A stretch of DNA of 58,392 nucleotides, taken from Macrostomum lignano (Eukaryota). The notes beneath the pieces were generated by a model, which had not been told where the DNA came from, made no database searches, and saw only the letters and a program-made list of their open reading frames with translations. Position 1 is the stretch's first letter, and each line of letters begins with the position of its first letter. Made by a program: the position numbers and the translations under genes. Of the stretch, positions 5,980-54,579 are shown piece by piece. The stretch is from contig NIVC01001050.1 in assembly GCA_002269645.1 (NCBI GenBank), positions 1 through 58,392 on the forward strand, written 5' to 3'.

Positions 5980-6328
5980 CTCAAGCAACAGTCGCGCTGT
6001 TTAGAATATCATACTTAGTCAAGCCGAAATTTATAATCGTTTATATTTCTGGCTAGAATGGTTTTTATAGCCAAGCGGGGGTTGGGCACAACAATAAGCC
6101 TGCATGCTTATTTTATTGCCATTGGCTTCTAAAAGAGGGGGCTTCATTTCCACTGGTCTCAAATAGATTCGTACCTAATGGCACACGCATGCCTACGCAA
6201 GATTCATTAAACAACACTGGGCAAGATTCGCCTAACCCAATGATTACGTGGCTTGGCCAAATTTACAAGTACATGTAACTCAGGTCGGTTCATCCTGCGA
6301 ATCTGGGAAGGTGGCAGCTTTAGTGTGA

Positions 6329-6620
6329 GGATCTAGCTCAGAAACTGAGGATCTAGGAGGCTGTATGGAACAGCAACTGAGGATCTGAGAGGCTGGCCCA
6401 GAAACTGAGTATCTGGGAGGCTGGCCGAGCAACTGACACTCTGGGAGGATGGCCCAGCAACTGGGGATCTGGGAGATCGTGGCCCAGAATCGTGGCCCAG
6501 AGGCTGGCCCCCAAACTGAGGATCTGGGAGGTTGGCACAAAAACTGAGGATCAATAAGGCTGGCCCAGCAACTGGGGATCATCATTGAGATGTTGGCCCA
6601 ACAACTGCGGATCTAAGAAG
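6329..6620. repeat. 28-bp minisatellite (consensus GCAACTGAGGATCTGGGAGGCTGGCCCA), copy A
   Basis: About 10 degenerate tandem units; the unit is not a multiple of 3, so the overlapping ORFs are spurious. Confidence 0.9.
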
Positions 6621-7552: not shown

Positions 7553-8520
7553 TGTTTAAAGTTCCAGCTCCTGTCTAGAGAGTAATGTTTAATTATCGGG
7601 TGTTTAAAGTTCCAGCTCCTGTCTAGAGAATAATGTGTAATTATCGGGTGTTTAAAGTTCCAGCTCCTGTCTAGAGAGTAATGTGTAATTATCGGGTGTT
7701 TAAAGTTCCAGCTCCTGTCTAGAGAGTAATGTGTAATTATCGGGAGTTTAAAGTTCCAGCTCCTGTCTAGAGAGTAATGTTTAATTATCGGGTGTTTAAA
7801 GTTCCAGCTCCTGTCTAGAGAGTAATGTTTAATTATCGGGTGTTTAAAGTTCCAGCTCCTGTCTAGAGAATAATGTGTAATTATCGGGTGTTTAAAGTTC
7901 CAGCTCCTGTCTAGAGAGTAATGTTTAATTATCGGGTGTTTAAAGTTCCAGCTCCTGTCTAGAGAGTAATGTTTAATTATCGGGTGTTTAAAGTTCCAGC
8001 TCCTGTCTAGAGAGTGATGTGTAATTATCGGGTGTTTAAAGTTCCAGCTCCTGTCTAGAGAATAATGTGTAATTATCGGGTGTTTAAAGTTCCAGCTCCT
8101 GTCTAGAGAGTAATGTTTAATTATCGGGTGTTTAAAGTTCCAGCTCCTGTCTAGAGAGTGATGTGTAATTATCGGGTGTTTAAAGTTCCAGCTCCTGTCT
8201 AGAGAGTGATGTGTAATTATCGGGTGTTTAAAGTTCCAGCTCCTGTCTAGAGAGTGATGTGTAATTATCGGGTGTTTAAAGTTCCAGCTCCTGTCTAGAG
8301 AGTGATGTGTAATTATCGGGTGTTTAAAGTTCCAGCTCCTGTCTAGAGAGTGATGTGTAATTATCGGGTGTTTAAAGTGCCAGCGGTTATCTAGGGAGTA
8401 ATTATCGTCCGTTTTTAAATTCCACCTCTTATCTAGGGAGTAATTATCGTCTAAAATTCCAGCACTTGTCTAGGGAGTTTAAAATACGTCTAGGTATCTA
8501 GATGTCTAGGTGTTAAAATA
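7553..8520. repeat. 48-bp tandem array (~17 near-perfect units plus degenerate 3' units)
   Basis: Unit TTTAAAGTTCCAGCTCCTGTCTAGAGAGTAATGTTTAATTATCGGGTG repeats head-to-tail from ~7553 to ~8380, then decays to ~8520. Stop codons occur in all three + frames. Confidence 0.95.
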
Positions 8521-10339
8521 CCAGCTTGATCAGGGCTGAGGGCAGCTTGAACATGTATTAAATGTACAACTTGATAGTATAATGTAGATAAAACTAACAC
8601 AAAAGTCTGCTGCTGCATAGTTTTTTTTTAAGTTAAACCAATCGATTAAACAGTACAATAAAGTTTGAGATCTTTATTACACTCGCTTTAGTATAAGTAT
8701 GACAAAAAAGCGAGTTGTGAGAAAAATGATAATAATATGTGTATTTTTTCGAAAAACAGCAACGAGCAGTGCGAGTGGAACTACCAATATAAAGAAAAAT
8801 TAAAAACACGCGGAACAAAGATTAACGAAAGTGATATTTTTTATATATATAACACTAAAGCACTAAGCACTGCGGGGTTAAAAGTGTAGCAAAGCGAAAA
8901 CACTGAGACGCGCAAAGTTATAATAATACGAATTGGAAATTATCGATGCTTTTTAAGAAGCTTCCCTACATGATTTGATCCTCCCCACTTCCAGTACAAG
9001 CCTTTATTTAACCAGCTAGAGAGGAGGGGAGAGGAGAGCTAAGAAGAGACAAACACTCAGCGGGTGAAAACGGTTACCCAGGCCAAGAAGCATCCCAGAG
9101 TCGTGATTAGAAACGCAGGTAGAATATGAAAGAAATTGACTCTAGACCACTCTTTAAGACGAGGTGTCACGGTGTACAAGTCGTCAAAAGTCGCTTAAAA
9201 GTCGCTTAAAAGCGTTTTATTGTCTGCGACTCTGGGGCCGTAGAGACGTACTTAAGGCCTGCTAGAGTGCATATGACGAATCAGAGTCGCGCTTGACGAA
9301 TCTGTTGCGCTTGTGACGCAACAGTCGCCTGTTCGTGGCATTAGACACGTTTGAGTCGTTAAAAAAGTTTACAAGAGTCGCCCTAGAATCGCCAGAGAGT
9401 TGTTTGAAAACGAATTTTTCAGCGATTCTTGTCACGGTAAGGTTTGAAACGGGAGAAGAGGCTTTGCGAGTTGGAGTCTGCCAGAACCCTGATCTAGATG
9501 ACCAATGCATTCACAACATAAACACTAATATAACAGGCTAAATTCAGCTTTCATCAACCGTGTAGTTTTGCAAGCTTACTTACAAAGTCTGTTACTCGTA
9601 TTTTGTTACTTTCTTAAACTATACAGTATTTAAAGCCTATCCCCAAGCGACTTAGATATTACACAAAATACAAATAGAACAATAAAAAGACAGTTAAATA
9701 GAACAGCTATGGACATAAATAAAGACGGAGAATTTGAAAGCGCTGAACTTTGCCAAACAATTTTAACACGATTCGACGTTGCCTTGGTTACTCGAGTTAA
9801 AAAAAGTGTTTACACACTTTTATACACGATTTTTTTCAGACAATCAAGTAAATAAGTAAAGTAAAAATATAAGCACACTTACTTACTGTGCCACTGTTAG
9901 ATCAGCCAGTAGTGCAGACAGCACTTTTCCTGCTCGATTTTTTACACGATTTTGTCTTTTACAGTTTTACATATTCTCAAAAGGCATCATACGTTATCGA
10001 AAGCGAGAAATGCTATTCCAGGGTTAATATTGTCCGCAACAACGGTCGCCAACCTTGCACTTTGTTAATTAATTACAAAAATTCAACTGCCAGTTGCTAG
10101 GAGTACATATAACACACAGACACTGACATTAGTTATTTTATCCAAGCTATAGATTAAGTGAAGAGAAAAACCTGCTTTAAATTAGAGTTAAAATTTACTA
10201 CTTTAGCATAGAAACTTATAAGAGCTTAACTTGGCATTTAAACTGATGCAGCCGTTTGGACAGCCAAAATGTACTTCGATATGTGGAACAAATCTATGTG
10301 TAAATAGTTAACTAAATACAAGAGAGTAGCGGTGGCCCA

Positions 10340-10650
10340 GTAAAAGAGGATCTGGGAGGCTGGCCCAGCAACTGAGGATCTGGGAGGCTGGCCCAGCAAC
10401 TGAGGATCTGGGAGGCTGGCCCAGCAACTGAGGATCTGGGAGGCTGGCTCAGCAACTGGGGATCTGGGAGATCGTGGCCCAGAATCTGAGAATCTAAGAG
10501 GCTGGCCCCCAAACTGAGGATCTGAGAGGTTGGCACAAAAACTGAGGATCAATAAGGCTGGCCCAGCAACTGGGGATCTGGGAGGCTGGCCCAGCAACTG
10601 GGGATCTGGGAGGCTGGCACAACAACTGGGGATCTGGGAGGCGGTGGCCC
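10340..10650. repeat. 28-bp minisatellite, copy B
   Basis: Same unit as 6329-6620, including the same ordered variant units (...GGCCCCCAAACTGAGG...TTGGCACAAAAACTGAGGATCAATAAGG...). Confidence 0.9.
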
Positions 10651-10819
10651 ATCTTAAAGATTCAAAGGTTATATAATAAACTAAGGATTGAGTTTTTCCC
10701 TGAATGGCACCAGCACGCAGTAGTGCAAAACAAAACTGCAATCCAGCTTTTAAACAGCCAAGTAAACATCACTTGCAGAATGCACAGTTCAGCTCTCAGA
10801 GCGTGACCAATGCCATCAA

Positions 10820-12690
<1,871 letters not shown>

Positions 12691-27385: not shown

Positions 27386-30300
27386 ATGTCATCGCAGAGT
27401 TCGTCACACCATTCGTCAAGTTCGTCAAAGTCAAGTTCGTCGTCAAAAAAGAGGGTATTACTACTACTTCTACTACTACTACTGCTGCTATTATTACTAT
27501 TATTAATACTACTACCATTACTATTACCGAAAGTACGAACATACTTCTACTCCCACAGCAGCACAAGTCCTCTGATGGCCCGACCCCGGCGAAACAGGTC
27601 AAGAGCCCCGATGCCACTGAGACTGTGTTGCTAAGCGCTGCTGCAGACGCCTCCAAGACGTTCACTCCAGCGCTCAGTCAGCAGTATCGCGAGCGAATCC
27701 GGCCAGTGCTGAACAGCATCGATCGTCTCCGGTCGCACGGCCTACAAAATGAGCTCCGCCTGCCCACAGTAGCCGTTGTGGGCGACCAATCGGTAGGCAA
27801 ATCCAGCGTGCTGGAGGCCATCTCGGGCGTGGACTTGCCGCGCGGTACCGGCATTGTGACTCGCTGCCCGCTGCAGCTGAGCATGCGCTCAAAGCCGACT
27901 GGAGACTGGACTGGTAGGATTAGGTGAGCATTTTTATTCTATTAATTCACGTCCTTCGAACTCCTTTCTGAATTTACATTAAATACACATAAAAATATCT
28001 TGCAAATATTAGCAAATTTTGACAGATTTGACAGCGCGGGTATTTGTCTTGCTAAAAAACATTTTCTCAATTACACTGCATGATATGAAATACCAGCAAT
28101 GAGGCTATTCTGCCCTTTCTACTGACCCCTGAGTACATACAAGAGCGCCAGTAATGTACACAGGCACGCGACTCCCACACACTCACACAAGGTGCACAGG
28201 GGCCCCGCACGGACAACCAACTGGCCAATATTTGTCCCAAATGAATGTGGCCGCACAGGCCCGAAATGAACTAGCTTCCTTTCTGCTGAAAACTAGCAGG
28301 CACTTTAGATTGAAATGAAAAATCAAAGTTGAAAAGTAAAGGGGATGTGAACTTAAGAGTCAAAATGGAGCCCGAAACATTCTGTCCCGGTTTCTCTACG
28401 CCAATCCCTTCATTTGGAGCCAAACAGCTGCCGTTATGCCGAAAACCCGGCCACTTTAGCATTTGAGGATCCCTATGAGGAGAAATGGGATTAATGGGGA
28501 AGAATTCATGTAAACTTCAGGTTCCAGAATGGAGCATGAAGCATTGGGTCCCGGTTTCTCTACGCCAATGCCTTCATTTGGAGCTTCAAACGCTTAAAAA
28601 ACGAGATGACCATGATATACGCTCCCCTTTTGGCACTTTTCATGTTTGTACGAAGAATAGGAGCGATAGTAATGTTATGTCATGCCCCCATTATGTTGTT
28701 TCTTAATAATGTTTATGTTATCTTCCCCACCCCAGCTCTCGTCAAGGGGGGTTTGTATCACACATATTAGACCGACGATTTCTACCTCGACGAAGTGGAG
28801 GTTAACCCGAAGTTTTGAGACGGAGGGTGGTAAACATCATTTTCGCACATTTATATCGTGTCAAAGGTGCAAAGCTTCCCCACAACCATTTCTCCCCATA
28901 GAGATCCCCAAATGCTAAAGTGTTCGGGTTTTCGCATGACGGCAGCTTTTTGGCTCCAAATGAAGGGATTGGCGTAGAAAAATCAGGACCGAATGTTTCG
29001 AACTCCATTTTGACTCTTAAGTTCACATCCCCTTTGTAAACTGCTGCTGGGCAGCACATCATTTGCCTTCGTCGAGAAAACGTTCTTCCAGTACTCCAGG
29101 CTGCAAAATTACAAAGATACGTGGGTTAAAGTATTTCAAAAGTCATTCCAATGTCTTCAAAGTTAACCAGCTGTAATTTCACAAGTGTCGTTTCCTGCTC
29201 TCCTAAGAGCCTTTTCTGACAAGACACCCTTCCAACCCCCGACAACAGCTACCAAAATCGCAAGGGCGAGCACGTCGAGCGTGAAATATCGAAAAAATGT
29301 GAAGTCGACGAAATGGTGCGCAAAGTACAAAACGAAATCACTGGCGACTCGAACGGCGTATCTACGGAGCAGATCGACCTGACCATTGAGAGCGCGGATG
29401 TGTCCGACCTCACCCTGGTTGACCTGCCCGGCATTGCCAGGTACTCTGAGAAGAATCCGAAGATCAACGAGGTCACCAAGCAGCTGATTCTGTCTTACAT
29501 CAGCCAGGACCAGGTGATCATCCTGGTTGTTGTACCCTGCAGCGTGGACATCGAGACAGTGGAGGCCATTGCTCTAGCCAAACAGGTGGACCCAGGGGGC
29601 ACCAGGACGATCGGAGTCCTGACTTGCCCGGACCTGACCAACCCTGGCAGCGAGGAGGACATCAAAGCCATCGTCAACAACCAAGGCAGAGTGCGACTGC
29701 ACAAAGGCTTTGTCATGGTGAAATGCCGCAGCCCCAAGGAGCTCAGGAACAACATTAGTCTGAGCGAGGTGGCCAAAATCGAGGAGGATTATTTCAGAAA
29801 CGATCCGCACTTCAGCCAGCTGCCAAAGGATATTGTTGGCACAAAGACGCTGGCAGAGAAGCTGACAAATGAGTTGTTCAAGGCAGTGGCTGCGGGCATT
29901 GAGACTCTGGAGGAGAGTCTGAAGGTAAGCCGACTGAGAAAGTCAGCTCCACGGGGGAGTTGGCGAACTTCGGTCCTCAAAGCCTTTCCATCCGGCCTTT
30001 AAATACTTTAAATACTTTATATGCGATCCCGCCCACTCAAAGTTTATGTATTTTCTCAGCTCTTTTCTCCTCTCTCCCCTCTTCTCTTCACTCTCCCCTC
30101 TTCTCTCCACTCTCCCCTCTTCTCTCCTCTCTCCCCTATTTTCTCTTTCCTCTCTCTTTCCTCTCTTTTCTTTTTTACTCTCTCCCTCCTGTCACCTCTA
30201 ATCGACTAATCCTGTCTTCTGATCGTATCTCTCTTATCAGGTCTTCTCTTTTTTCCTCTCTCCTCTTGTCCTCTGTGTAACAGGTAGGATTTTGTGTCCA

Positions 30301-32352
30301 TCCTGCCTGCACCTTCTGCTCACGTCGGATAACAAAGAATTGAACTCGAAGCACGGTTTTTCTGGGCCCAGGCTGCTGCGGCCTACAGCCCAGCCGAGGC
30401 AATGGCCATGCCTTTAGGCCCGCAGATGCGGGCGAGAGGAAAGTGAAGCGAGCGCCTCCACTGTCTCTCCTTTTTATTTAAAACATAAGCATACGCTTAT
30501 GTTACATAGAAAAAATGAAAATTGCGCAGTAGTTTAGGTGCAGCCGTCCTTTGCAAATATGACTGCATTTTATGCAGCTCATACTCTGGTTAAAGAAGTT
30601 TGCTGCCCTTAGTCAGCGGATATGCATTCAAACAGAATAGCAGTTTACTTTTTCATTACGTAATATATAAGACTTGATGTGGCTGAATGCTTTCAGGTCA
30701 GATTTCTATTTGGCGCTTGTTTTTATGTGCCCATGCGTGCTTAGGGTCAATCGAATGTATACGTCATCGTTTTGATTTGACAGCTCGCAAACTGAACTAA
30801 ATTAAAAAATTTATTTCTCACAGAGCAAGCTGAAGGACTACGAAGAGGAGCTGAAAGACCTGGAGGACAGTCTGTGCGAGACAGACAGCGACAAGAGAGC
30901 CTACCTGATGCGCAAGCTGCAGCAGTTTGCCTCAAAAGTACACGCCGCCACGGCCAGTCCAGAAGACGAGCGGGACGCATTCGCCACGGGCAGCTCCAGC
31001 AGTCTGTACAGCAGCTGTCTGACTAATTGTTCGAGCTTTGGCTACCTTGTGAGTAATAGCCAGCCTGGTGAGTTGTTTATTCATTACGAGTTTCCTGGCG
31101 CACGGGGCGCTTCTATGCGAAATATAGATTTTAGTTGTAAATACTTGTAACAACCATGTATCATAATCGGCGACTTTTTTAGCACAAAGTCCATACACAT
31201 TATAAAATTTCATTCTTTATGCTAAACTGGCCACGCGAACTCGACGTTGCTTGACGTCCATGACAAACTTTCTATTTCAGACTGGATCATTGACTACTCG
31301 AAAAGCCTACCCAATTATGTGTCCGACGAGGTGCAACTTAGAAGAGGACGCGAGCTTCCAACTTTCACATTTGTGTTCCCTGTTGTTCAGAAGATTGTAT
31401 TCGAAGAATATTTGCCAGAAGTAGAAAACCTGGCGAAGTGGCTACTCGGTGAGGTGCAGTTTCAAGTTACTAAATCGCTTGAAAACCTGACCGAAAATTG
31501 TTTCAAAGCGTTTCCAAGGCTGCTGCTACTTGTGAAAGAAACTGTTGTCAAGGCGATCGAAGCCCAAGAGGCTGAGTGTCGTGCAGACCTGGCTAAGCTG
31601 ATCGCACACGAGCGTCGCTTGTTCACTCAGGACAGTCAGTTTTTGGAAAAACTGCGTTACGTTACAGAGCAACAAAAGGAGTTTCTGGCTAAGCAACCTG
31701 TTCCTCCGTAAGTAACTGATTTAATTGGGCGTTTACCGAAGGATTTTAGGAGCTGACGCCCCTTGTTCCTGGCACCCAAAGAAGCGTCCCTAGCTACTAC
31801 GAAACTCCTGGCTATGCCTCTCACATTTGGATCTAAAAACACTACAAATGGAATAGTTATTATATATCCAATTTAAAAGAGGAGGTTCCGTTTTTCAGCC
31901 CAACCCTTTTTTCGGGTTTCGGAGTCGCGGCAGCATCACAGCCGATCCGAATCTCTCGCGAGCCTCAAGCAAGCCCAACCACAAGGGCGTCTCAAGGGGG
32001 CTTCAAGAGAGCCGAGCCTCAAGTGAGCCGAGCCTCAAGCGAGCCGTCACATGAGGAGCAAATTCGCCTGGGAACCAAAGCCTACCTGCTGCTGGCCTGT
32101 CAGCGCATCTCGGACACGGTGCCAATGTCCGTGCTGTGCCACATGCTCGACGGCGTGGCCACAAAGCTGGTTGCCGAGATAACCCGACTGTTTGCCGGCG
32201 GCAGCCACCAGGTGGAGATCCTGGATCTGCTGCGAGAGAAGGAGGGCAGGCAGCGGAGGAGGCGCTACCTGATTCAGGCTGCTTGTCAGATGCGCGAGTC
32301 CCGGAAGGAGCTGCAGAGCGCCAAGCAGAACCGCATGCTGCTGGAGGACTGA
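27386..32352 (+). CDS. Mx: Mx-like dynamin-family GTPase, copy 1 (744 aa); exons 27386-27454, 27559-27923, 29249-29924, 30824-31067, 31281-31707, 31899-32352
   Basis: [16 protein letters not shown] (BSE), G1 GDQSVGKS, Mx signature [14 protein letters not shown]3 DLPG, G4 variant TCPD, stalk RGRELP...FTQD, and [19 protein letters not shown]...LLREKE. No PH or PRD domain. All splice phases are consistent with an open frame. Confidence 0.9.
28338..29035. mobile_element. MITE with ~150-bp terminal inverted repeats in Mx1 intron 2
   Basis: AAAGGGGATGTGAACTTAAGAGTCAAAATGGAG...GAGAAATGG (28338-28487) is the reverse complement of CCATTTCTC...CTCCATTTTGACTCTTAAGTTCACATCCCCTTT (~28876-29035). Non-coding. 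Confidence 0.8.
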
Positions 32353-33933: not shown

Positions 33934-34073
<140 letters not shown>

Positions 34074-34483: not shown

Positions 34484-39491
<5,008 letters not shown>

Positions 39492-41084: not shown

Positions 41085-41217
<133 letters not shown>

Positions 41218-41734
41218 TACACTTAGGCATACTGATGCCACCCTTCGTAACATGTCAGTAGTACGAAGGGTGCACATGAAACTAGCTCTTACTGCGAGAA
41301 AAAAAGCACAGAAAAAACAGGTTTCCAGGAAATAGTTCACACGCACATCTGCAGGAATTTTTTGGAAATTTTTGGCGCAGTTCATTATACGAGCGTATGT
41401 ACATGGATGAAAAGGGTGTGCAGTTTATCATTATCGTTCCCTGTAGAAATTCCAACGGACAGTGGTGTATCAGTGCTTAAATGGGAGTGTGAATATGCAC
41501 TGTACTGCCCGTTGTTCTTATTCAAAATATTTTGCCCTGCCGGCAATTTGTTTTCTCTGACTTTGAGTTTCGAAAACGCAACTCATTTTTTGGATTCTGT
41601 ATAGCAGACGTACTATACAAGCCTGAAATGTCATCGCGGAGTTCGCCAAATTTGTCGTCAAACAAGCGGGTAAATCATTTTTGTAGTGCTTAGCCATAAA
41701 ATTTCCCGCGCTACATTTCAGTAAAAGACTACTA

Positions 41735-43260
<1,526 letters not shown>

Positions 43261-44076
43261 GCAGTACAAACAATACTACCTTTTCTCCCACAGCAGCACA
43301 AGTCCTCTGATGGCCCGACCCCGGCGAAACAGGTCAAGAGCCCTGATGCCACTGAGACTGTGTCGCTAAGCGCTGCTGCAGACGCCTCCAAGACGTTCAC
43401 TCCAGCGCTCAGTCAGCAGTATCGCGAGCGAATCCGGCCAGTGCTGAACAGCATCGATCGTCTCCGGTCGCACGGCCTACAAAATGAGCTCCGCCTGCCC
43501 ACAGTAGCCGTTGTGGGCGACCAATCGGTGGGCAAATCCAGCGTGCTGGAGGCCATCTCGGGCGTGGACTTGCCGCGCGGTAGCGGCATTGTGACTCGCT
43601 GCCCGCTGCAGCTGAGCATGCGCTCAAAGCCAACTGGAGACTGGACTGGTAGGATTAGGTGAGCATTTTTATAGTTCTATCAATTCACCTTCTTAGAACT
43701 CCTTTCTGAATTGACATTAAATGCACATAAAAAATATCTTGCAAATATTAGCAAATTTTGACAGATTTGACAGCGCGGGTATTTGTCTTGCTAAAAAACA
43801 TTTTCTCAATTACACTGCATGATATGAAATACCAGCAATGAGGCTATTCTGCCCTTTCTACTGACCCCTGAGTACATACAAGAGCGCCAGTAATGTACAC
43901 AGGCACGCAACTCCCACACACTCACACAAGGTGCACAGGGGCCCCGCACGGACAACCAACTGGCCAATATTTGTCCCAAATGAATGTGGCCGCACAGGCC
44001 CGAAATGAACTAGCTTCCTTTCTGCTGAAAACTAGCAGGCACTTTAGATTGAAATGAAAAATCAAAGTTGAAAAGT

Positions 44077-44811
44077 AAAGGGGATGTGAACTTGGGATTC
44101 AAAAATGGAGCCCGAAACATTCTGTCCCGGTTTCTCTACGCCAATCCCTTCATTTGGAGCCAAAAAGCTGCCGTTATGCCGAAAACCCGGCCAGTTTAGC
44201 ATTTGAGGATCCCTATGAGGAGAAATGGGATTAATGGGGAAGAATTCATGTGAAGTTCAGGTTCCAGAATGGAGCATGAAGCATTGGGTCCCGGTTTCTC
44301 TACGCCAATGCCTTCATTTGGAGCTTCAAACGCTTAAAAAACGAGATGACCATGATATACGCTCCCTTTTTGGCACTTTTCATGTTTGTACGAAGAATAG
44401 GAGCGATAGTAATGTTATGTCATGCCCCCAACATGTTGTTTCTTAATAATGCCTGTGTTATCTTCCCCACCTCAGCTCTCATTGTGTTCCCCCGTTTTGC
44501 TGGAGACTTAAATAGCGTCAAGGGGGGTTTGTATCACACATATTAGACCGACGATTTCTACCTCGACGAAGTGGAGGTTAACCCGAAGTTTTGAGACGGA
44601 GGGTGGTAAACATCATTTTCGCACATTTATATCGTGTCAAAGGTGCAAAGCTTCCCCACAACCATTTCTCCCCATAGAGATCCCCAAATGCTAAAGTGTT
44701 CGGGTTTTCGCATGACGGCAGCTTTTTGGCTCCAAATGAAGGGATTGGCGTAGAAAAATCAGGACCGAATGTTTCGAACTCCATTTTGACTCTTAAGTTC
44801 ACATCCCCTTT
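44077..44811. mobile_element. Same MITE in Mx3 intron 2
   Basis: Same TIRs at the orthologous position. Confidence 0.8.
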
Positions 44812-46585
44812 GTAAACTGCTGCTGGGCAGCACATCATTTGCCTTCGTCGAGAAAACGTTCTTCCAGTACTCCAGGCTGCAAAATTACAAAGATACGTGG
44901 GTTAAGGTATTTCAAAAGTCATTCCAATGTCTTCAAAGTTAACCAGCTGTAATTTCACAAGTGTCGTTTCCTTCTCTCCTAAGAGCCTTTTCTGACAAGA
45001 CACCCTTCCAACCCCCGACAACAGCTACCAAAATCGCAAGGGCGAGCACGTCGAGCGTGAAATATCGAAAAAATGTGAAGTAGACGAAATGGTGCGCAAA
45101 GTACAAAACGAAATCACTGGCGACTCGAACGGCGTATCTACGGAGCAGATCGACCTGACCATTGAGAGCGCGGATGTGTCTGACCTCACTCTGGTTGACC
45201 TGCCCGGCATTGCCAGGTACTCTGAGAAGAATCCGAAGATCAACGAGGTTACCAAGCAGCTGATTCTGTCTTACATCAGCCAGGACCAGGTGATCATCCT
45301 GGTTGTTGTACCCTGCAGCGTGGACATCGAGACAGTGGAGGCCATTGCTCTAGCCAAACAGGTGGACCCAGGGGGCACCAGGACGATCGGAGTCCTGACT
45401 TGCCCGGACCTGACCAACCCTGGCAGCGAGGAGGACATCAAAGCCATCGTCAACAACCAAGGCAGAGTGCGACTGCACAAAGGCTTTGTCATGGTGAAAT
45501 GCCGCAGCCCCAAGGAGCTCAGGAACAACATTAGTCTGAGCGAGGTGGCCAAAATCGAGGAGGATTATTTCAAAAACGATCCGCACTTCAGCCAGCTGCC
45601 AAAGGATATTGTTGGCACAAAGACGCTGGCAGAGAAGCTGACAAATGAGTTGTTCAAGGCAGTGGCTGCGGGCATTGCGACTTTGGAGGAGAGTCTGAAG
45701 GTAAGCCAACTGAGAAAGTCAGCTCCACGGGGGAGTTGGCGAACTTCGGTCCTCAAAGCCTTTCCATTCGGCCTTTAAATACTTTAAATACTTTATATGC
45801 AATCCGGCCCACTCAAGGTTTATGTATTTTCTCAGCTCTTCTCCACTCTCCCTTCTTCTCTTCACTCTCCCATATTTTCTCTTTCCTCTCTCTTCCCTCT
45901 CTTTTCTTTTTTACTCTCTCCCTCCTATCACCTATAATCAACTAATCCTGTCTCTTCTGATATAAGACTTGATGTGGCTGAATGCTTTCAGGTCAGATTT
46001 CTATTTGGCGCTTGTTTTCTTTTGCGCATGCGTGCTTAGGGTCAACCGAATGTACACGTAATCGTTTTGATTTGACAGCTCGCAAACTGAACTAAATTAA
46101 AAAATTTATTTCTCACAGAGCAAGCTGAAGGACTACGAAGAGGAGCTGAAAGACCTGGAGGACAGTCTGTGCGAGACAGACAGCGACAAGAGAGCCTACC
46201 TGATGCGCAAGCTGCAGCAGTTTGCCTCAAAAGTACACGCCGCCACGGCCAGTCCAGAAGATGAGCGGGACGCATTCGCCACGGGCAGCTCCAGCAGTCT
46301 GTACAGCAGCTGTCTGACTAATTGTTCGAGCTTTGGCTACTCTGTGAGCAGGAGCCAGCCTGGTGAGCTGTTTATTGATTACGAGTTTACTGGCGCACGG
46401 GGCGCTTCTATGCGAAATATAGATTTTAGTTGTAAATACTTGTAACACATACTTGTAACATTAAATACTTGTAACAAGCTTGTATCGTAATCGTCGATTT
46501 TAATCTTGCTTTTGTTTTAGCACAAAATCCATGCACAGTTTAAAAAATGTTTCACTTTATGCTAAACTCGTCGTTGCTTGACGTC

Positions 46586-49500
46586 TGATGTGGATGGACT
46601 CTTATTAGTATATCCATGTCTATGGCCCTGACCTCCACCGCCTACGTGCTAAGAGGCAGGGCGATTAAATATTGTTTTAAGCTCCTTGGCTCGCCACCAG
46701 AGCAGCCCAAATTACATTATACCAAAGCATATAACATGGCATCGCAAGCAGGCACTGAAACCGTGGGCTAAAGCTTCTGGCAAAGAAACCACAAGATACC
46801 CCCAAAGCAGCAGCGCTCTACGTCGGCATCGCCTTCAAGGCAGAAGCCAGAAAAGTCGGAACGATCATCAGCAGCATCAGCAGCATCATCAGCAGCATAC
46901 TCTTGAGGCATACTTCGATTCAGTTAGCATCCAGCACGAGGAATCAGACAGCATCCACGTAACTCGGAAGAAAATGGCAGCTCGACGAGCTTGCATGTTG
47001 AACGCAGTTACATCTGCTACCTTCTCGAAGTATAAGAATCTACCTCTGACGGATCAACAATTCAAGGACCCAGAGATTGTCATGAATTTCATCAGAGATC
47101 ACGTACTCGGACAGGTTAATATCATCGTAGAGAGGAACAGGTTCTGGAAACGGCAACAAAATGACGGAGAAAATTTTAACGACTGTCATGCAATTGAGGG
47201 ACCTGATGCGAACATGTAAGTTCTGTAAGCATTCCAACGACCTACTGAGGGATAAAATTGTGCTATGAGTACGAAATCCGGAGACAATCAAGCATCTATT
47301 AGCACAACCAGATCTCTCTCTCTCGCTGACGCGCTGACAATATGTAGATCAGAGGAAGCCTGTGAGATCCAAAAAATGAAATCTGCACAGCTTCACAGGT
47401 GTCCATAGTGCGCAAACACCGAGGAAAAACTCCAGGTGGGGCTCGATCAAAGACTCCAGAAGCAAAGAAATGCACTGCCTGTGGTAAAGGGCGACATCAG
47501 CGCTCAGAATGTCCCGCCAAGGACAAGAAGTGCTTTAACTGCGGTCGCATTGGACATTTTGGTTCCATGTGCCGGTCCAGTCGCAGCACTGGTCATCCGG
47601 ATAAAAGGCGACCACCGAGAATCTCAACTTTGGTTTCTACACTGGAACCCGCAACCCCAACAGTAGTAGTCTCGATAAATGGGGAGCAGCTGGAAATGAT
47701 GCCCGATACGGGATCCAATATCGATCCAATCCGAGAATGCGATTGCAAAAAGCTCCGCATCCGTGTTGCACAACTAAGGCATGACGCCATATTTCCTAAA
47801 TCAGCCAGTGGACAGTTCATTAAGAGTGACGGCAATTTCTCCGCCACAATAACGCTGAACGGGAAGCACGCAGCGACAAGGATGTGCTGAAGAACTTGGT
47901 CGCGCCAGTGCTGTCCTGGCAGAGCTGTAGAAAACTGGGAATCATCCCTAAAGAGTTTCCAAGTCAGATAAACCAGATAACTCAGGTTCTGACGAATGAC
48001 GGAAGAAAACATACAGAACTGGATTTGATCCAAGAATTCCCGAGGGTCTTCGACGGAGTAATTCGGCCGATGAAGGGCGAAAAATTTTCGATTGTGCTCA
48101 AAATAGGACGCGATCCCATTTTCCGTGAAGACGCCACGCCGGCTATCACTGCCACTGCATGAAAAACTTAAAAACGAACTCGATGCCTTGGAAAGACAGC
48201 AAATTATCTGCAAAATAACAGAGCCGACACCCTGGTGCGCTCCAATAGTCGTAGCCCCGAAGAAGGGCACTGACCGAATTCGTCTTTGCGTAGATTTTAG
48301 AGAGATAAACAAATACGTTCTGAGACCTCGATACTAATCACCAACACCACTGGAAGTTGTGGCCAGCACCAATGTATCCAACGCAGAATGGTTTACAGTT
48401 GTTGATGCATTGAAAGGATCCCATCAAGTACCACTCCACGAAGACAGTATGCCACTGACAACATTTATTACTCCTTATGGAACATACATGTTCAGAATGG
48501 CACCTTTCGGGATCAGCTCTATCTCAGAATATTACAACAGGAGACTGGATAGTGTTCTACAGGGCTTGAAAGATACTCGCCACATTGTGGATGACTGCAT
48601 AATCGCAAGCGCCGACTACGAAAGCCAAATCCAAGCTGTTCGCGAATTTATTTATCGGTGTGACGAGAGTGGAATATCATTGAATAAGAAAAAATTTGTC
48701 TTCGCCAAGAAAAATGTAAAGTTTGCTGGATTTATCCTTACACTAAAGTGCTATCAGGTGGACCCTGACATGACAGCAGCCATTGCTCAATTCCCTGAGC
48801 CATCAAATGTTACAGAATTACGCGCATTTATGGGCCTAGTGAATCAAATAGGACCATTCACAGATTCGATCGCAGAATGTACCTCGATATTAAGACCTCT
48901 ACTGAGCGCGAAGAATTAATTCATCTGGAACGAGGAGCACCAAAAAGCCTTCGATAAGGCACGAATCCATCTGTCTAAAGTCCCATCATTCGCATACTAC
49001 GATCACACGAAGCCAACCGCACTGCACACCGACGCATCAAGGTTGAAGGGACTCGGATTTGTTCTCAAGCAGCAACAACCTGACGGCGCCTGGCGAATGA
49101 TTCAGGCAGGATCACGGTTTCTGGCTGACGCGGAGACGCCGAAGATCGAGCTCGGGGAAGATCGAGCTCGAGTTTCTAGCAATTGTGTGGGCTTCGCAAA
49201 AATGGACTCTCTTGTTTTTTAAGGACTCGATTCATTTCAAATCGTGACTGACCACAAGCCACTTATTCCGATATTAAACGGCTACCAACTAGACCAAATC
49301 GAAAACCCGAGGTTGCAGCGCCTTCGTGCCAAGCTTAATCGCTACAACTATGAAGCAAAATGGGTACGAGGTAAAGACAATGTATATGCCGATGCACTAT
49401 CAAGAGCTCCGATTGCAAATGCAACTGAAGAAGATCAGATTGATGAGAATCAAGCTCTAAGTAGTGTGAATTTGTTGACTATGGTAATGGAAGATAGGGA

Positions 49501-51017
49501 AATTGACTTTAACATGAAGAGAATACAAGAACACGTAAAGAAGGACACAGAAATGCAAGAGCTTATCCAAGTAATAGAGAATGGATTCCCGAACGATAAA
49601 GCTAATCTTCCAGTTAATCTAAGACCGTACTGGCACATTAGACATAAGCTTGTCGTCTAAAACGGAGTCGTTCTCAATGGATGCCGTTGTATCATCCCTA
49701 AAGAAATGCGAAAAGAAGTTTTGAGAACACTACATTCAAGTCACCAAGGTGCTACTAAGACCAAAGCAAGAGCAAGAATGGTCGTCTATTGGCCCAGCAT
49801 GGAACGTCAGATCGATGACACAATAAAGCAATGCAAAGCATGCCAAGAAACCCGTCCAAGTCAGGTCAGAGAACCGATGTTGCCGAGAACTACACCAGCA
49901 AGGTGCTTCCAGGAAGTTCATGCTGACTTTTGTGAACACCGCGGCAGGCAATTCCTAATGATAGTGGACGGATACTCTGGATGGATCAACATATGGAACT
50001 TCGGACAAAATGCTCCGGTTTACAAGCTGATTAACGCGTGCCGTGAGCTATTTTGTCAGACAGCTGTACCGGAATTGTTCTGGTCAGACTCAGGTCCTCA
50101 GTTCGAGGCCAGCGCATTTGGTAACTTTTTGAAGAGATGGGAGTCGAGTCCAGATTCTCATCCCCATACCACCACCAAAGCAACGGGAGAGCCGAAGCGG
50201 CAGTCAAGTCAGCCAAAAAGATCATCAGAGGATCGTGGGATTATCGCAACAATGACATAAACAAGGACAAAATGGCGGAAGGAATACTTATCTATAGAAA
50301 CACACCTATGTATGACGGACGCATTCCTTCTATTATGCTGTATGGACACCCAGCAAGAGAGATTCACTCCTGCTCATCGAAGAAGCTTTAATCCCGAATG
50401 GTACAACACGATTAAACAAATGGAGGACACAGCATCAGAAGTTCACGAGGCTGTGGAGCAAACAAGTCCAAGAGAAGCCTCGATGGAATCCGAATAGGGT
50501 CGACTGTAGTTCTTCAAGAGCCAACAACGAAACTGTGGCAACGGAGAGGAGTAGTGGTAGAGGTCGGAAAAACACCGCGACTACCTGGTAAAGTTGGCGA
50601 GCGGCAGAATACTACGGAGAAACCGCATTTACATACGGCCAACATTGCCACTGACCGCCGACAACTGGAAAATGACAAAGACGACAAACGGCGAAAGTAC
50701 AAGACGTACGGAGACGACTTGTACTACGACGGCCAATCAACCAAGCAAGGAGAAACCTCGAAGTAGCTCGAGAGCAACGAAGGGCATCCCGCCCGCCCGA
50801 CTCCAGTACAGTAGGCTAGGACATCCAAAAGTTAATTTTGTCGAGTGATAAGGACACTGAATTGAAAGGGGAGATGATGTGGATCGACTCTTATTAGTAT
50901 ATCCATGTCTATGGCCCTGACCTCCACCGCCTACGTGCTAAGAGGCAGGGCGATTAAATATATTGTTTTAAGCTCCTTGGCTCGCCACCAGAGCAGCCCA
51001 AATTACATTATATAACA
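46586..51017 (+). mobile_element. Ty3/Gypsy LTR retrotransposon, full-length but frameshifted; LTRs 46586-46736 and 50875-51017, TSD ACGTC
   Basis: TG...CA LTRs; ACGTC at 46581-85 and 51018-22; PBS-like TGGCATCGC after the 5' LTR; PPT GAAAGGGGAGA before the 3' LTR. Gag has two CCHC knuckles (CTACGKGRHQRSEC, CFNCGRIGHFGSMC). Protease DTG, RT (VDALKG...PFGI...IVDD), RNase H (HTDAS, TDHKPL) and integrase (HSSHQG..CKAC, HADF, SDSGPQF, SNGRAE) follow in PR-RT-RH-IN order, with multiple stops and frameshifts. Confidence 0.95.
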
Positions 51018-53325
51018 ACGTCCATGGAAAACTCTCTATTTCAGCCTGGATCATTGACTACTCGAAAAGCGTACCCAATTATGTGTCGGACGAGGTGCAG
51101 CTTAGAAGAGGACGCGAGCTTCCGACTTTCACATTTGTGTTCCCTGTTGTTCAAAAGATTGTATTCGAAGAATATTTGCCAAAAATAGAGAACCTGGCGA
51201 AGTGGCTACTCGATAACGTGCAGTCTAAAGTTACTAAAACGCTTGAAAACCTGGCCGAAAATTGTTTCAAAGCGTTTCCAAGGCTGCTGCTACTTGTGAA
51301 AGAAACTGTTGTCAAGGCGATCGAAGCCCAAGAGGCTGAGTGTCGGACAGATATGGCTAAGCTTATTGCACACGAGCGTCGCTTGTTCACTCAGGACAGC
51401 CAGTTTTCGGAAAAACTGAGTTACGTTACTACACAATGGCAGGAGTTCCTAGCGACACATCGTACTCCTCAGTAAATAATTGCTTTGAATAGGCATGGTG
51501 CCTTCGGACCTGGAGCCCGTTGGTGCAGCAATGTAAAATTCAGTCCATCCTAATACAAGATCCTTAACCATTTCTTGCAGGCGGCTGCCAGCACAAGCCG
51601 CCTCAAGCGACCCATCAAACGAGGAGCGAATTCGCCTGGGAACCAAAGCCTACCTGCTGCTGGCCTGTCAGCGCATCTCGGACACGGTGCCAATGTCGGT
51701 GCTGTGCCACATGCTCGACGGCGTGGCCACAAAGCTGGTTGCCGAGATAACCCGACTGTTTGCCGGCGGCAGCCACCAGGTGGACATCCTGGATCTGCTG
51801 CGAGAGAAGGAGGGCAGGCAGCGGAGGAGGCGCTACCTGACTCAGGCTGCTTGTCAGATGCGCGAGTCCGGAAGGAGCTGCAGAGCGCCAAGCAGAACCG
51901 CATGCTGCTGGAGGACTGAGACAAGCGCCTCTATTTGAGATGAAAAATGGAAGACTGTTCATGCGAACACGAATTTACCTAAATTTATTTTAACTATCTT
52001 TGAAGTGACCACAACTAATACGAGTATACCTTTGAACGGAGACTAACAAAAGTACTTTTGAATGGTAGCTACATGCCACCTCGACCCCGACTGAACAATT
52101 TGATACTTTAGAAATAACCCTGACGACCCCAACTACAAGCGTATCTCGGAACTCTTAAACTCTGGTGGAACGGAAAACTTTATTAGAAATGTCTCAAAAA
52201 ATACCCGAAAATGTTTATCAACTACTTACAGTACTCCTATTCATCTGCTTGTATCCATTTATAACCAGTTTTTAACCAAGTCTTGTAAGCTTTGACGAAG
52301 TTTACAACAGCATCAATTTTTTCTTGTTTTGTCACAGCCTCAGTTTTAATTAGTATTGCATAAATTCCATTTCGCAAAAAATTTGGTAAGTAGTCGTAAT
52401 AAATGACCCTACAAGCATGATCGGAATCTTTTTAGTCATAAATGTTTAATTAAAATTCGCACTTGAGCACATTCTCTTCTCTTTCCTACTTAAAGTAGCC
52501 GCTTATAGAAGATAATGAAATTAATTATCGCTAAAACAAAATCTGATCAATTTTAAATTATTAATAAATACACTTACTTCAGTTTTGCGATAGTTGCGCA
52601 TATGTCCGAGGATCCCGAAATTATGGTATGAAAAGCTATTGTTATCATTAGTTATTTCCCTCAAAATTTAGGGCTAGTTTTTTATTCAAGCTACGAACGC
52701 CAACTGGAAGCAAGCAAGTACAAAGTACAAAAATAGACGCTAGGCTAGACATGAATTGCTTTATTGTCACGGCAATTCTACGGTTTTTCCATGGATTTTC
52801 CGACACAAAGTTCCCTTTTCTGCCGACAACTGAGTGCATTGCAACAATATTGGCATGTTGTACTAAGGTATATCAAAATTCAGGTATGCGCTCGTAATTT
52901 TTGCTTGCGACAATTTTGGACAGTCTTCGATAAGTAACGCATAAAAAAGACAGGCTTAGATACACAAGAATTCAACTGCAATTGATAGTTGGTGTATTTA
53001 CAAATTTTACAGATCCTATGATGAAGCATAAAAAGCAGCTGCGCTTGTATGGGGCCAATTGTTAAATGTCTTTAAAAAAACTTTTTTTCTGAATAAATAT
53101 CGCATTATAAAAAATGAAATTTACAATAAATTACGGAATTAAAAACATCCGAATCGAAATGCATCTGTACACATGATCGTTTTGCTCGGTGGAGCAGCAT
53201 GACGAACCATAAATACATTCATGGCTACTATTAGACATGGATTCGCATTGATATCTAGAAAAAATATCTACAAAGAATATTCGTGCTTTCTGTCTTTGTT
53301 TCGTAGCTGATAGTTCAGCGCCTAG

Positions 53326-54094
53326 TCAATAGCAGCATTCCCTCGGCTCGGACACTTGCCGCAGCGTCCGCTTCATCCGGTCCATATCGGCCATGGTCTT
53401 CTCGCCGAACCGGTAGATTCGCTTTTTGCTGCGCTTCCCAGTGTCCAGGTAGTCGAAATAGCCTTTGGACTTCTCCCTGCGAACTCTGTGGGGAAGAATG
53501 GTTGTTGTTCATCTATTCATGCTTCATTCTTCTCATTAGCAGCAAAGCCAGAAGTTCGGTTCATTACCTCATCGCTCTGGCAAACGTGTCGTAGGTAGCT
53601 TTCTTGTTGCCCTTGATTTTTTTCCACAACAGTCCCATGGTCTCCGTGTCGAGCGTTTTAAAATGGCGACATTCGCCAGACGTCTCGCGTCCGTTCTCGT
53701 CGCAGAAGGCGAGAATCCGTCGAAGATCCTTAGTCTTGTCGCCGTATGTCGAATTAAGCAGAATGGTGAGGATGACCTCGTGCACTTTAAGCTTCGAAGA
53801 CATTTCTTCCGGCTTGCAGTTGCTGCTTCTTTCTGCAATAAGTTGAAAAAAAGGAATTAATGAGTCTACTCGTAAATTCCCTTGCATGTCTTTTGAAATA
53901 CCATGAAGCTCAAAATAGCTTGCGCACCTATGACTTCCTTGATGTAGTCCACCATTTCGTCAATCTCTGCCTCGCGAGCTGAAGAAAACTGCTGGAGCGA
54001 TTCGCAGCTCTCGAAGCCGCTGCTCACAGTCGTTGGACTTGGCGGTTCATCTAGCAGTTGTTTCCTTTGGGAAATCTCCTTGAGTAGAACTTGC

Positions 54095-54127
<33 letters not shown>

Positions 54128-54579
54128 GGCTCAAACATGGGAACGTTCGGCAGGTTGGTAGCACTCCCACGACCAGTTCCATCAGCGTCCTCCATCAGCT
54201 CGTCAAGAAGCTCCTTAGTCTCCTTGTCACAAGAAACTCCTAGTCCGCTAGTATATTGTCGCTCTCCAAACGTCTCACACTTTTCATGCAAAACCGAGCT
54301 GCTCAGCTGAAAGTTTTCATCACCTTGCAGTTGGTTTTCGTCCACAATTTCCTGCAGAAGATCTAGCAGACAGCTGTCATCAATCTCAGGTACACAGACT
54401 TGCTGCTCCGGCCCGGGCGCAGGAATTTCCGGACCTGTAGAATTTTGGCACACGGAGCTTTGCCAACTGAAACTGAAACTGTTCTCGTAGTCCAGTAGAA
54501 GGCCAGCAGTCAGTTCGTTCGAATCGACTTCCATAATATCGAAGTCAGACATGTTGATCTCTGTAGTTTTTTGGCTCAT
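53326..54579 (-). CDS. Divergent ETS-domain protein 1 (358 aa); exons 54579-53928, 53832-53568, 53485-53326
   Basis: Spliced: ...KVHEVILTILLNSTYGDKTKDLRRILAFCDENG...FKTLDTETMGLLWKKIKGNKKATYDTFARAMRVRREKSKGYFDYLDTGKRSKKRIYRFG... This has the ETS pattern (LL, FK.LD.E...LW...K.N...Y....RAMR...R.Y.FG), plus an acidic/polyQ N-terminus like an activation domain. Phases 1 and 2 are consistent. Confidence 0.75.

Follow-up and report, generated by a model that had tools for sequence, protein, structure and literature searches.

The window, as we call the whole stretch of 58,392 nt analysed here (contig NIVC01001050.1), carries three tandem six-exon genes for Mx-like dynamin GTPases of the flatworm Macrostomum lignano. 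The models of copies 1 to 3 were built on GT-AG junctions and open frames, all on the + strand, and copy 1 is 97% identical to the M. lignano protein PAA69582.1.

27386..32352, + strand: copy 1, A-type, 744 aa (GT-AG junctions, open frame, Pfam domains); exons on the + strand at 27386-27454, 27559-27923, 29249-29924, 30824-31067, 31281-31707 and 31899-32352
34484..39491, + strand: copy 2, recombinant, 735 aa (gene model, region-wise divergence, site patterns); exons on the + strand at 34484-34525, 35138-35502, 36864-37539, 37958-38201, 38420-38846 and 39038-39491
41628..51938, + strand: copy 3, B-type with a short L4, 703 aa as read (gene model); exons on the + strand at 41628-41669, 43294-43658, 45025-45700, 46119-46362, 51045-51471 and 51581-51938
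41742..43260, + strand: (ACT)n microsatellite in intron 1 of copy 3 (TRF, sequence)
34598-35106: the copy 2 equivalent of this microsatellite (TRF)

The (ACT)n arrays separate successive repeat units of the Mx array. Copy number differs between assemblies, with three copies here and two, one A-type and one B-type, in each of two public contigs (L001 and L002). The same gene family has been studied in the same species by Langley et al. 2025 (PMC11789081); the searched text of that paper gives M. lignano at least six Mx genes and reports the phylogenetic placement of its Mx proteins in the Mx clade, mentions neither a tandem arrangement nor loop L4 nor positive selection for the flatworm Mx, and does not tie the terms 'paralog' or 'gene conversion' to flatworm genes.

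The Pfam search of copy 1 returned Dynamin_N (4e-41), Dynamin_M (2e-35) and GED (4e-6), with no match to a PH domain or a proline-rich domain. The motifs GDQSVGKSS and DLPGI are invariant across an alignment of 63 sequences. The G4 motif reads TCPD instead of TKPD. The best phmmer matches among PDB sequences were MxB and MxA (~6e-83), compared with 5e-42 for dynamin-1, and the database matches outside M. lignano were mostly vertebrate Mx. In the AlphaFold model (mean pLDDT 76.6) the stalk helices are long, and the place of the PH domain of dynamin is taken by a disordered loop. The four best Foldseek hits were MxB and MxA chains (4whj, 5uot, 5gtm A/B), while MxA 3szr came seventh behind two dynamin-3 tetramer chains; the target-normalised TM was ~0.8 for 4whj, 5uot, 5gtm and 3szr. 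Judged by sequence and predicted fold, the genes of the array are members of the Mx family, nearer to Mx than to dynamin, Drp1 or OPA1. Each gene codes for an N-terminal tail that is disordered and rich in Ser and Lys, for a G domain, for a bundle signalling element (BSE), for a four-helix stalk and for a GED.

Position and make-up of loop L4

The initial annotation had taken a segment near the end of copy 1 (31660-32050) for the equivalent of loop L4 of MxA, and both the alignment to MxA and the predicted structure bear this out. Query residues 571-585 aligned to MxA 537-551 and residues 640-650 to MxA 568-578. In the predicted model of copy 1 a helix spans residues 569-589, pLDDT falls below 50 at 596-639 and a further helix begins at 645, so that the disordered stretch lies between stalk helices. 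The interval given in the annotation nearly coincides with an unbroken run of differences private to copy 3.

31655..32052, + strand: L4 divergence island of copy 1 (unbroken copy-3-private run, MxA L4 alignment, pLDDT), made up of the tail of exon 5, intron 5 (31708-31898) and the head of exon 6 and coding for about residues 577-648
38794..39191, + strand: L4 block of copy 2, which shares 98.7% identity with that of copy 1
51419..51620, + strand: L4 block of copy 3, B-type (alignment to copy 1), made up of the tail of exon 5, a 109-nt intron 5 (51472-51580) and a short head of exon 6
32003..32046, + strand: tandem repeat with 2.8 copies of a 16-bp unit (consensus TCAAGAGAGCCGAGCC) in the L4 coding sequence of copy 1 (TRF)

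The peptides that the annotation had quoted were read correctly: 73 aa in copy 1 (residues 578-650) and 35 aa, 38 aa fewer, in copy 3. Its replacement of GVAA by GAPA in copy 2 is equally correct and reflects a change of the codons GTC GCG to GCC CCG. Copies 1 and 2 show three coding differences in the 398-nt block, all three nonsynonymous, and two more in intron 5.

As in human MxA, where L4 covers residues ~533-572, the loop is found at the tip of the stalk and separates the third stalk helix from the fourth; in both proteins it is unstructured and the most variable part, and in both the entry into the next helix is marked by a conserved S-x-EE-(I/Q). It measures ~77 residues in A-type and 39 in B-type proteins, compared with ~40 in MxA. 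An aromatic motif, LFSGFG, occurs in the A-type loops, where it resembles the aromatic-Gly surroundings of F561 in MxA (PMC12047444), and is missing from the B-type loop of copy 3. The gap of copy 3 in its pairwise alignment to copy 1 falls across the 16-bp repeat, and slippage of this repeat accounts for some of the additional residues of the A-type loop. Among the M. lignano proteins, P0003 has a third type of L4, and P0002 is of the B type, having the short L4 of copy 3 together with an intact C-terminus.

Divergence island and recombination mosaic

The L4 blocks of copies 1 and 3 were compared by anchored pairwise alignments with shuffle controls. In a self-BLAST, homology between the two copies breaks at 31665..32032 and 51429..51600, respectively. 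Mismatches affect 18 of the 48 positions in the exon-5 tail but only 25 of 600 in the flanking coding sequence (Fisher p=3e-11). Between these two copies, exons 2 to 4 are 1-2.5% diverged, the stalk 6% and the exon-5 tail 37% (without any indel); the GED shows 1.25% divergence and the 3′ flank 7.9%. The edges of the island are sharp, with one difference private to copy 3 in the 164 nt upstream and none in the 248 nt downstream. Intron 5 differs in length by 82 nt and is barely alignable; to call it 'unrelated' nevertheless goes too far, since the first ~110 nt are weakly homologous (z=3.6 against shuffles, ~65-70% identity). The G domains indeed differ little: over the 423 codons of exons 2-4, which encode N-terminus, G domain and BSE, there are only 3-6 residue differences between copies. 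The earlier statement that divergence is concentrated in L4 is correct in so far as the paralogs differ most there; however, exon 1, which encodes the N-terminal tail, also differs (23 vs 14 aa), and outside the GED the 3′ part of copy 3 is 6-8% diverged while its 5′ half is 1-2.5% diverged.

Copy 3 has two further features.

51868..51869, + strand: 1-bp deletion, copy 3 reading CC against CCC in copies 1 and 2 (32300-32302 in copy 1)
46448..51017, + strand: degenerate remnant of an LTR retroelement, ~4.6 kb long, within intron 4 of copy 3 (fragmented ORFs, domain matches)

Owing to the deletion, the final 17 aa of the C-terminal BSE helix are exchanged for others. The ORF fragments of the retroelement match zf-CCHC, RVT_1 and Integrase_H2C2/rve; the remnant is found in both public contigs at 98.5-99.3% identity, and in copy 3 it separates a homogenised 5′ half from a 3′ half that has diverged further. 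Copy 3 might be considered a decaying pseudogene whose odd L4 reflects constraint lost after inactivation: its deletion removes the end of the BSE helix, intron 4 holds the 4.6-kb remnant, and no gene is annotated over the B copy in the examined parts of the two public contigs. We regard this as very improbable. The frame of copy 3 is otherwise open and its splice sites are canonical, the retroelement is intronic, the GED carries no private change and dN/dS in the stalk is 0.33-0.39. Moreover, because the intact B-type protein P0002, with the same short L4, exists, the deletion is taken to be an allele or a consensus error.

Alternatively, one L4 block of an otherwise young duplicate pair could have been overwritten in a single ectopic conversion whose donor was a divergent Mx paralog outside the present sample. 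The very sharp boundaries between the island and its nearly identical flanks would fit such an event, as would the many Mx paralogs of M. lignano, P0003 providing a third L4 type. Nevertheless, a search with word size 7 found no donor of the copy 3 block in the DNA compared here, nor was one seen among the M. lignano proteins listed. The N-terminal sides of the blocks of copies 1 and 3 share YVT.Q..EFLA and their introns begin with weakly homologous sequence, so that they look like diverged versions of one sequence; in addition, with 6-8% divergence in both stalk and 3′ flank, the pair is not young throughout. A replacement of this kind is therefore improbable.

The copies of the array are arranged as a mosaic. 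Copy 2 resembles copy 3 from exon 1 to intron 3 (0.3% divergence in intron 2, 1.2% in intron 3) and copy 1 from exon 4 to its end (0.5% in intron 4, 1.6% in intron 5). Site patterns accordingly change from 'copy 1 odd' in introns 2 and 3 to 'copy 3 odd' from exon 4 on, and none of 20,000 permutations was as clustered in a runs test (p<5e-5). The homogenised tracts take in non-coding sequence of the introns, and the public A copies carry copy-3-like stalk residues.

One might suspect that these copies are mis-joined haplotypes or homeologs of a partly duplicated genome, in which case the comparison would be allelic. The two public contigs have two copies, not three, and long microsatellites lie between the units. 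This explanation is nonetheless extremely improbable. In both public contigs an A-type copy neighbours a B-type one, the latter recognised by its 5′ half and the intron-4 retroelement, as both loci end just before or inside exon 5 and so short of its L4; fused gene models of another assembly place a B-type L4 after an A-type one. The A-then-B order is therefore independent of the present assembly. Copy 2 also has private variants of its own.

The explanation that we consider probable, and the best for the data as a whole, is that of an array subject to crossing-over and conversion, with the L4 block as an unconverted island of deep divergence. The array would have evolved by unequal crossing-over and gene conversion, to which the near identity of the G domains can be attributed, and the hybrid copy 2 fits a passage from a two-copy A-B array to A, B/A hybrid, B. 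Conversion tracts would have homogenised the G domain and BSE and, on either side of L4, a stalk patch immediately before it and the GED immediately after it, while the L4 block (exon-5 tail, intron 5 and exon-6 head) would have stayed outside them. Being disordered, the loop should tolerate indels; we infer that a heterologous block then barred conversion tracts, so that coding, synonymous and intronic positions diverged together. The proteins that result have the enzymatic core in common and differ strongly in L4. Some observations sit less easily with this explanation. Sharp edges at a known specificity loop are also expected if selection acts against homogenisation of L4, and the seven real L4 substitution SNPs among A-type copies are all nonsynonymous (7/7). 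As the exon-5 tail is 37% diverged without an indel, indel heterology alone cannot explain the missing conversion there, and in these data 'old and unconverted' is not separable from 'locally hypermutable'.

Proposed selection and loop swapping

In human MxA, L4 is the fast-evolving specificity determinant, with an aromatic residue at position 561 being critical (PMC12047444). The initial annotation had proposed that the same adaptive hotspot operates in the flatworm. This finds no support, as silent sites and intron 5 have diverged as much as replacement sites. Between A and B, the N-side coding part of L4 gives pS 0.47-0.59 and pN 0.24-0.28 (S being ~12-15 sites, from one B-type DNA block), and its synonymous differences exceed those of the flanks (p=3e-4). 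Among the four A-type copies, variable columns make up 3-6% of the L4 coding sequence and 4.2% of intron 5. In both comparisons, A against B and among the four A-type copies, the divergence of L4 thus matches neutral intron rates. The ratio of nonsynonymous to synonymous changes among A-type copies is 7:1 in L4 and 32:28 elsewhere, a difference that in this small sample is not significant (p=0.13). The sole synonymous L4 call among these copies adjoins a 3-bp indel. A dN/dS above 1 was not found at L4 codons either between A and B or among A-type copies, although with such small samples neutrality is unproven.

It could still be argued that diversifying arms-race selection on a viral-target L4 drove the A and B loops apart and keeps them apart against conversion. 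The segment is the L4 equivalent and predicted to be disordered, the edges of the island coincide with those of the loop, and the aromatic LFSGFG is confined to the A-type loops; the 7:1 ratio among A-type copies and the three differences between copies 1 and 2, all of them replacements, point the same way. On the other hand, where A and B can be aligned pN/pS is ~0.5, and intron 5 has diverged to the same extent as the coding part, L4 polymorphism among A copies is no higher than that of its intron, with the N:S contrast at p=0.13, repeat slippage made part of the length difference, and weak constraint alone gives fast divergence in disordered loops. Such an arms race is, to our mind, unlikely, even if selection may possibly keep the two L4 types apart. 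Nothing that can be read from the DNA shows selection creating or maintaining the L4 difference, and what is seen resembles the outcome of recombination mosaicism about a loop prone to indels; it is no evidence of adaptive evolution.

The annotation had further suggested that an exon junction at L4 allows loop swapping. The loop is split, not flanked, by one phase-2 intron (intron 5); 427 nt separate it from the preceding intron, and none follows downstream. No chimeric loop combining an A half with a B half was seen in the five DNA copies or the protein models, and the suggestion is not upheld. The intron is in phase 2 and shared with a 42%-identical paralog, P0006, which indicates that it was inherited. 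Conservation of this intron with vertebrates was considered and rejected, since in the cichlid fish Mx examined L4 lies within one exon, in contrast to the split L4 of the flatworm. In Owenia Mx, introns flank L4. Of the adaptive interpretation as a whole, the Mx identity of the genes, the position of L4 and the peak of paralog difference stand, while selection and loop swapping are not supported.

Relation to Mx genes of other animals

The flatworm mosaic closely parallels that of mammalian Mx paralogs, where neighbours exchange BSE and GTPase sequence in tracts that reach introns, and where the N-terminus and L4 cannot be aligned between paralogs (Mitchell et al. 2015, PMC4687636). The same study warns that ignored recombination produces false selection signals. 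Compared with the mammalian genes (PMC4687636), the flatworm array is independent and much younger. Unlike them, it has an evident hybrid copy from unequal crossing-over and a copy-number difference between assemblies, and its conversion tracts also cover the GED and some of the stalk, stopping only at the loop. Positive selection at L4 has been demonstrated for primates but not for the flatworm copies.

Recent work has shown that Mx predates interferon and is expanded in M. lignano. We know of no interferon in flatworms. That diversifying selection holds two L4 types distinct in an animal without interferon, which would make the stalk-tip recognition loop ancestral in animal Mx and not a vertebrate invention, is a proposal we consider doubtful; if true, an evolvable recognition loop would be combined with conversion preserving the enzymatic core. 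A peak of loop divergence that suggests an 'arms race' can come from recombination history and tolerance of indels, and silent sites have to be looked at before such a peak is put down to selection. What the mammalian Mx genes show, a core homogenised by recombination with a divergent L4 and N-terminal tail, is also found in a flatworm. Should L4 serve as a target-recognition surface here as it does in MxA, two specificities would be available from the array, and M. lignano, a laboratory animal tractable by RNAi and transgenesis, provides two naturally occurring L4 variants that share a nearly identical scaffold for tests of recognition outside the vertebrates.

An array of three Mx-like genes

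The window DNA is eukaryotic, and self-comparison resolves three tandem units (~27.4–35.1, 35.0–42.2 and 43.2–52.4 kb) with (ACT)n microsatellites between successive units. (CAGA)n arrays are also found between units, at 33934–34073 and 41086–41217. Each unit was modelled as a gene of six exons with canonical GT-AG junctions throughout.

27386–32352, + strand: copy 1, six-exon model, 744 aa
34484–39491, + strand: copy 2, six-exon model, 735 aa
41628–51938, + strand: copy 3, six-exon model
46448–51017, + strand: degenerate LTR-retroelement remnant of 4.6 kb in intron 4 of copy 3; its gag, RT and integrase ORFs are fragmented

The copy 1 protein contains the Pfam domains Dynamin_N, Dynamin_M and GED, and by sequence its nearest solved structures are human MxB and MxA (~6e-83, versus 5e-42 for dynamin-1). 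A database search found it 97% identical to M. lignano PAA69582.1; besides M. lignano paralogs, the matches listed are mostly vertebrate Mx, plus a small number of annelid and mollusc Mx-like proteins. For M. lignano a minimum of six Mx proteins was already published in 2025 (PMC11789081), in the only article that a literature text search found to mention Macrostomum together with myxovirus resistance. The G4 motif of copy 1 (residues 270–273, window ~29620–29635) is TCPD rather than the usual Mx/dynamin TKPD. TCPD occurs in every M. lignano Mx-like protein read (this subfamily and the paralogs P0006, P0008 and P0010) and also in P0007; Owenia has TRPD and Haliotis TKPD.

Copies 1 and 2 have a long stalk loop L4 (A-type) and copy 3 a short one (B-type). 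At 51868–51869 copy 3 reads CC where the other copies have CCC (32300–32302 in copy 1), and this 1-bp deletion shifts the reading frame for the final 17 aa of the C-terminal BSE helix and moves the stop to 51938. UniRef holds a B-type protein (P0002) that shares this short L4 and has an intact C-terminus, so the deletion is either an allele or a consensus/assembly error.

Upstream of the array lie a 48-bp satellite (7553–8402, 17.7 copies, 96% matches), 28-bp repeats at 10333–10651 and again at 6339–6580, and a (TATC)243 microsatellite (11381–12353). An uninterrupted 815-aa ORF ~21 kb upstream of the array (3541–5988, − strand), with the P-loop GPAGSGKS and weak, sub-threshold Pfam matches to AAA_22, NACHT and nSTAND3, may be a STAND/NLR-like NTPase gene. 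Downstream, two related ORFs on the − strand (53564–54579 and 56782–57075) end in an Ets-like motif and may be duplicated Ets-domain genes; the Pfam Ets match of the former is weak (E=1e-4).

Mosaic divergence and the position of L4

The initial annotation had located the divergence of the paralogs at 31660–32050, in L4. The position is borne out: the run of copy 3-specific differences spans 31655–32052 in copy 1 (51419–51620 in copy 3), comprising the exon-5 tail, intron 5 and the exon-6 head. Its sequence readings were likewise correct, namely 73 aa in copy 1 (residues 578–650), 35 aa in copy 3, shorter by 38, and GVAA replaced by GAPA in copy 2 (codons GTC GCG to GCC CCG). The G domains are indeed near-identical, with 3–6 of 423 residues differing between copies across exons 2–4 (G domain, BSE and most of the N-terminal tail).

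Divergence between copies 1 and 3 along the gene
Exons 2–4 and introns 2–3: 1–2.5% (intron 3 ~5%, plus a 481-bp indel)
Exon 5, stalk part: 6% (dN/dS 0.33)
Exon-5 tail (L4 N-side): 37%, ungapped
Intron 5: weak homology, first ~110 nt only (z=3.6); 191 versus 109 nt long
Exon-6 head (L4 C-side): length differs by 114 nt
GED: 1.25%
3′ flank: 7.9%

In the exon-5 tail 18 of 48 nt differ, whereas flanking coding sequence has 25 differences in 600 nt (p=3e-11). When the odd-one-out copy was recorded at each variable site, it was copy 1 in introns 2 and 3 and copy 3 from exon 4 onward; in a patch directly upstream of L4, copies 2 and 3 agree. The L4 block is an uninterrupted run of changes private to copy 3. 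A single such difference falls in the preceding 164 nt, the following 248 nt are free of them, and copy 3 is odd at no variable site of the GED. In a runs test, none of 20,000 permutations was as clustered as the observed pattern.

Alignment to MxA and structure prediction agree that the segment is L4. With phmmer, residues 571–585 pair with MxA 537–551 and residues 640–650 with MxA 568–578, blocks that bracket the unaligned middle of L4, which in MxA spans ~533–572. An AlphaFold model (63 homologs as input, mean pLDDT 76.6) has a helix at 569–589 and pLDDT below 50 at 596–639, after which the following stalk helix starts at 645; its best structural matches are MxB (4whj, 5uot) and MxA (5gtm, 3szr), with a target-normalised TM of ~0.8. 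The assignment of the segment to L4 is thereby confirmed. Pro, Ser, Ala, Gln and Arg are abundant in the loop. Some of the additional length of the A-type loop comes from a 16-bp tandem repeat (32003–32046, 2.8 copies), a sign of slippage.

The short, Ser-rich exon 1 is a second variable spot, encoding 23 aa in copy 1 (27386–27454) versus 14 aa in copies 2 (34484–34525) and 3 (41628–41669). Its product is a disordered Ser/Lys-rich N-terminal tail, reminiscent of the variable N-terminus of mammalian MxB. A microsatellite sits in intron 1, which is almost entirely (ACT)n and varies 16-fold in length, from 104 nt in copy 1 (27455–27558) through 612 in copy 2 (34526–35137) to 1624 in copy 3 (41670–43293).

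Recombination in the array and the intron within L4

From exon 1 to the end of intron 3 copy 2 resembles copy 3, and from exon 4 on it resembles copy 1, as expected of a product of unequal crossing-over in an array of one A and one B copy. Such an arrangement exists: two public M. lignano contigs (loci L001 and L002) each carry one A-type copy followed by one B-type copy. The intron-4 insertion is present in the B copy of both, at 98.5–99.3% identity; its ORFs match zf-CCHC, RVT_1 and Integrase_H2C2/rve, and in copy 3 it marks the point where the homogenised 5′ half gives way to the older 3′ half. In the initial portion of the stalk the public A copies have copy 3-like residues, a result of further exchange between paralogs. 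The hybrid copy 2, the two-copy contigs and the stalk exchange together argue that the near-identity of the G domains was produced by recombination. The G domains are thus no slow-evolving backdrop that L4 has outpaced.

Intron 3 of copy 1 contains about 480 bp of extra sequence (30108–30664) that neither copies 2 and 3 nor the two public A copies have; a 19-bp tandem repeat (30060–30145) lies just upstream. Public annotation at the locus is unreliable: the automated UniRef models P0122 and P0123, from another M. lignano assembly, fuse A and B copies into proteins of 1276 and 1926 aa, one of them including retroelement ORFs as well, and in one model the B copy's exon 6 is translated out of frame.

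It had also been suggested that an exon junction in L4 allows loop swapping. An intron does split the loop, but it lies inside L4 rather than flanking it, and no L4 combining an A-type with a B-type half was found among the copies and gene models compared. The intron is in phase 2, as in the paralog P0006 (42% identical), and in both the array genes and P0006 it adjoins a shared Q-P-(P)-V-P motif; being common to P0006, it is older than the array. In a cichlid fish Mx the whole of L4 lies within a single exon; in the annelid Owenia, L4 has introns on either side.

Selection on L4 and the comparison with vertebrate Mx

Human MxA L4 is unstructured, evolves rapidly and sets orthomyxovirus specificity, for which it is crucial that residue 561 is aromatic (PMC12047444). 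The initial annotation proposed the same adaptive hotspot here. This was not demonstrated, silent sites and intron 5 being as diverged as replacement sites. In the alignable N-side of L4, pS between copies 1 and 3 (0.47–0.59) is at least as high as pN (0.24–0.28), synonymous divergence exceeds that of the flanks (p=3e-4), and intron 5, inside the block, has diverged as much as the L4 coding sequence. Among four A-type copies (copies 1 and 2 and the two public ones), 3–6% of columns vary in L4 coding sequence, 4.2% in intron 5 and 6.7% in the stalk. Neither pN/pS nor the intron-5 comparison nor this four-copy variability gave a signature of selection on L4; the silent, intronic and A-type data thus place its divergence at neutral intron rates, the outcome that the initial annotation itself had named as speaking against its proposal.

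Diversifying selection might nevertheless have driven the A and B loops apart and kept them from being homogenised. Selection against homogenisation would likewise give a sharp island, and the 37% ungapped divergence of the exon-5 tail is unexplained by indel heterology alone. We consider this unlikely given the silent and intronic divergence, and the ratio of replacement to synonymous changes among the A-type copies, 7:1 in L4 versus 32:28 elsewhere, is not significant (p=0.13); the sole synonymous call in L4 adjoins a 3-bp indel, and a replacement excess is also as expected of a weakly constrained disordered loop. Recombination history and a disordered loop tolerant of indels largely explain the pattern.

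Mammalian Mx paralogs undergo recurrent gene conversion, which homogenises their BSE and GTPase regions and reaches introns, leaving the N-terminus and L4 unalignable, and the authors of that work warn that selection tests are misled if recombination is ignored (PMC4687636). The flatworm array shows this pattern independently, and resembles mammalian Mx also in having the N-terminal tail encoded by exon 1 as a variable region besides L4. Its chief value is a natural pair of A and B loops on a common scaffold in a tractable invertebrate.
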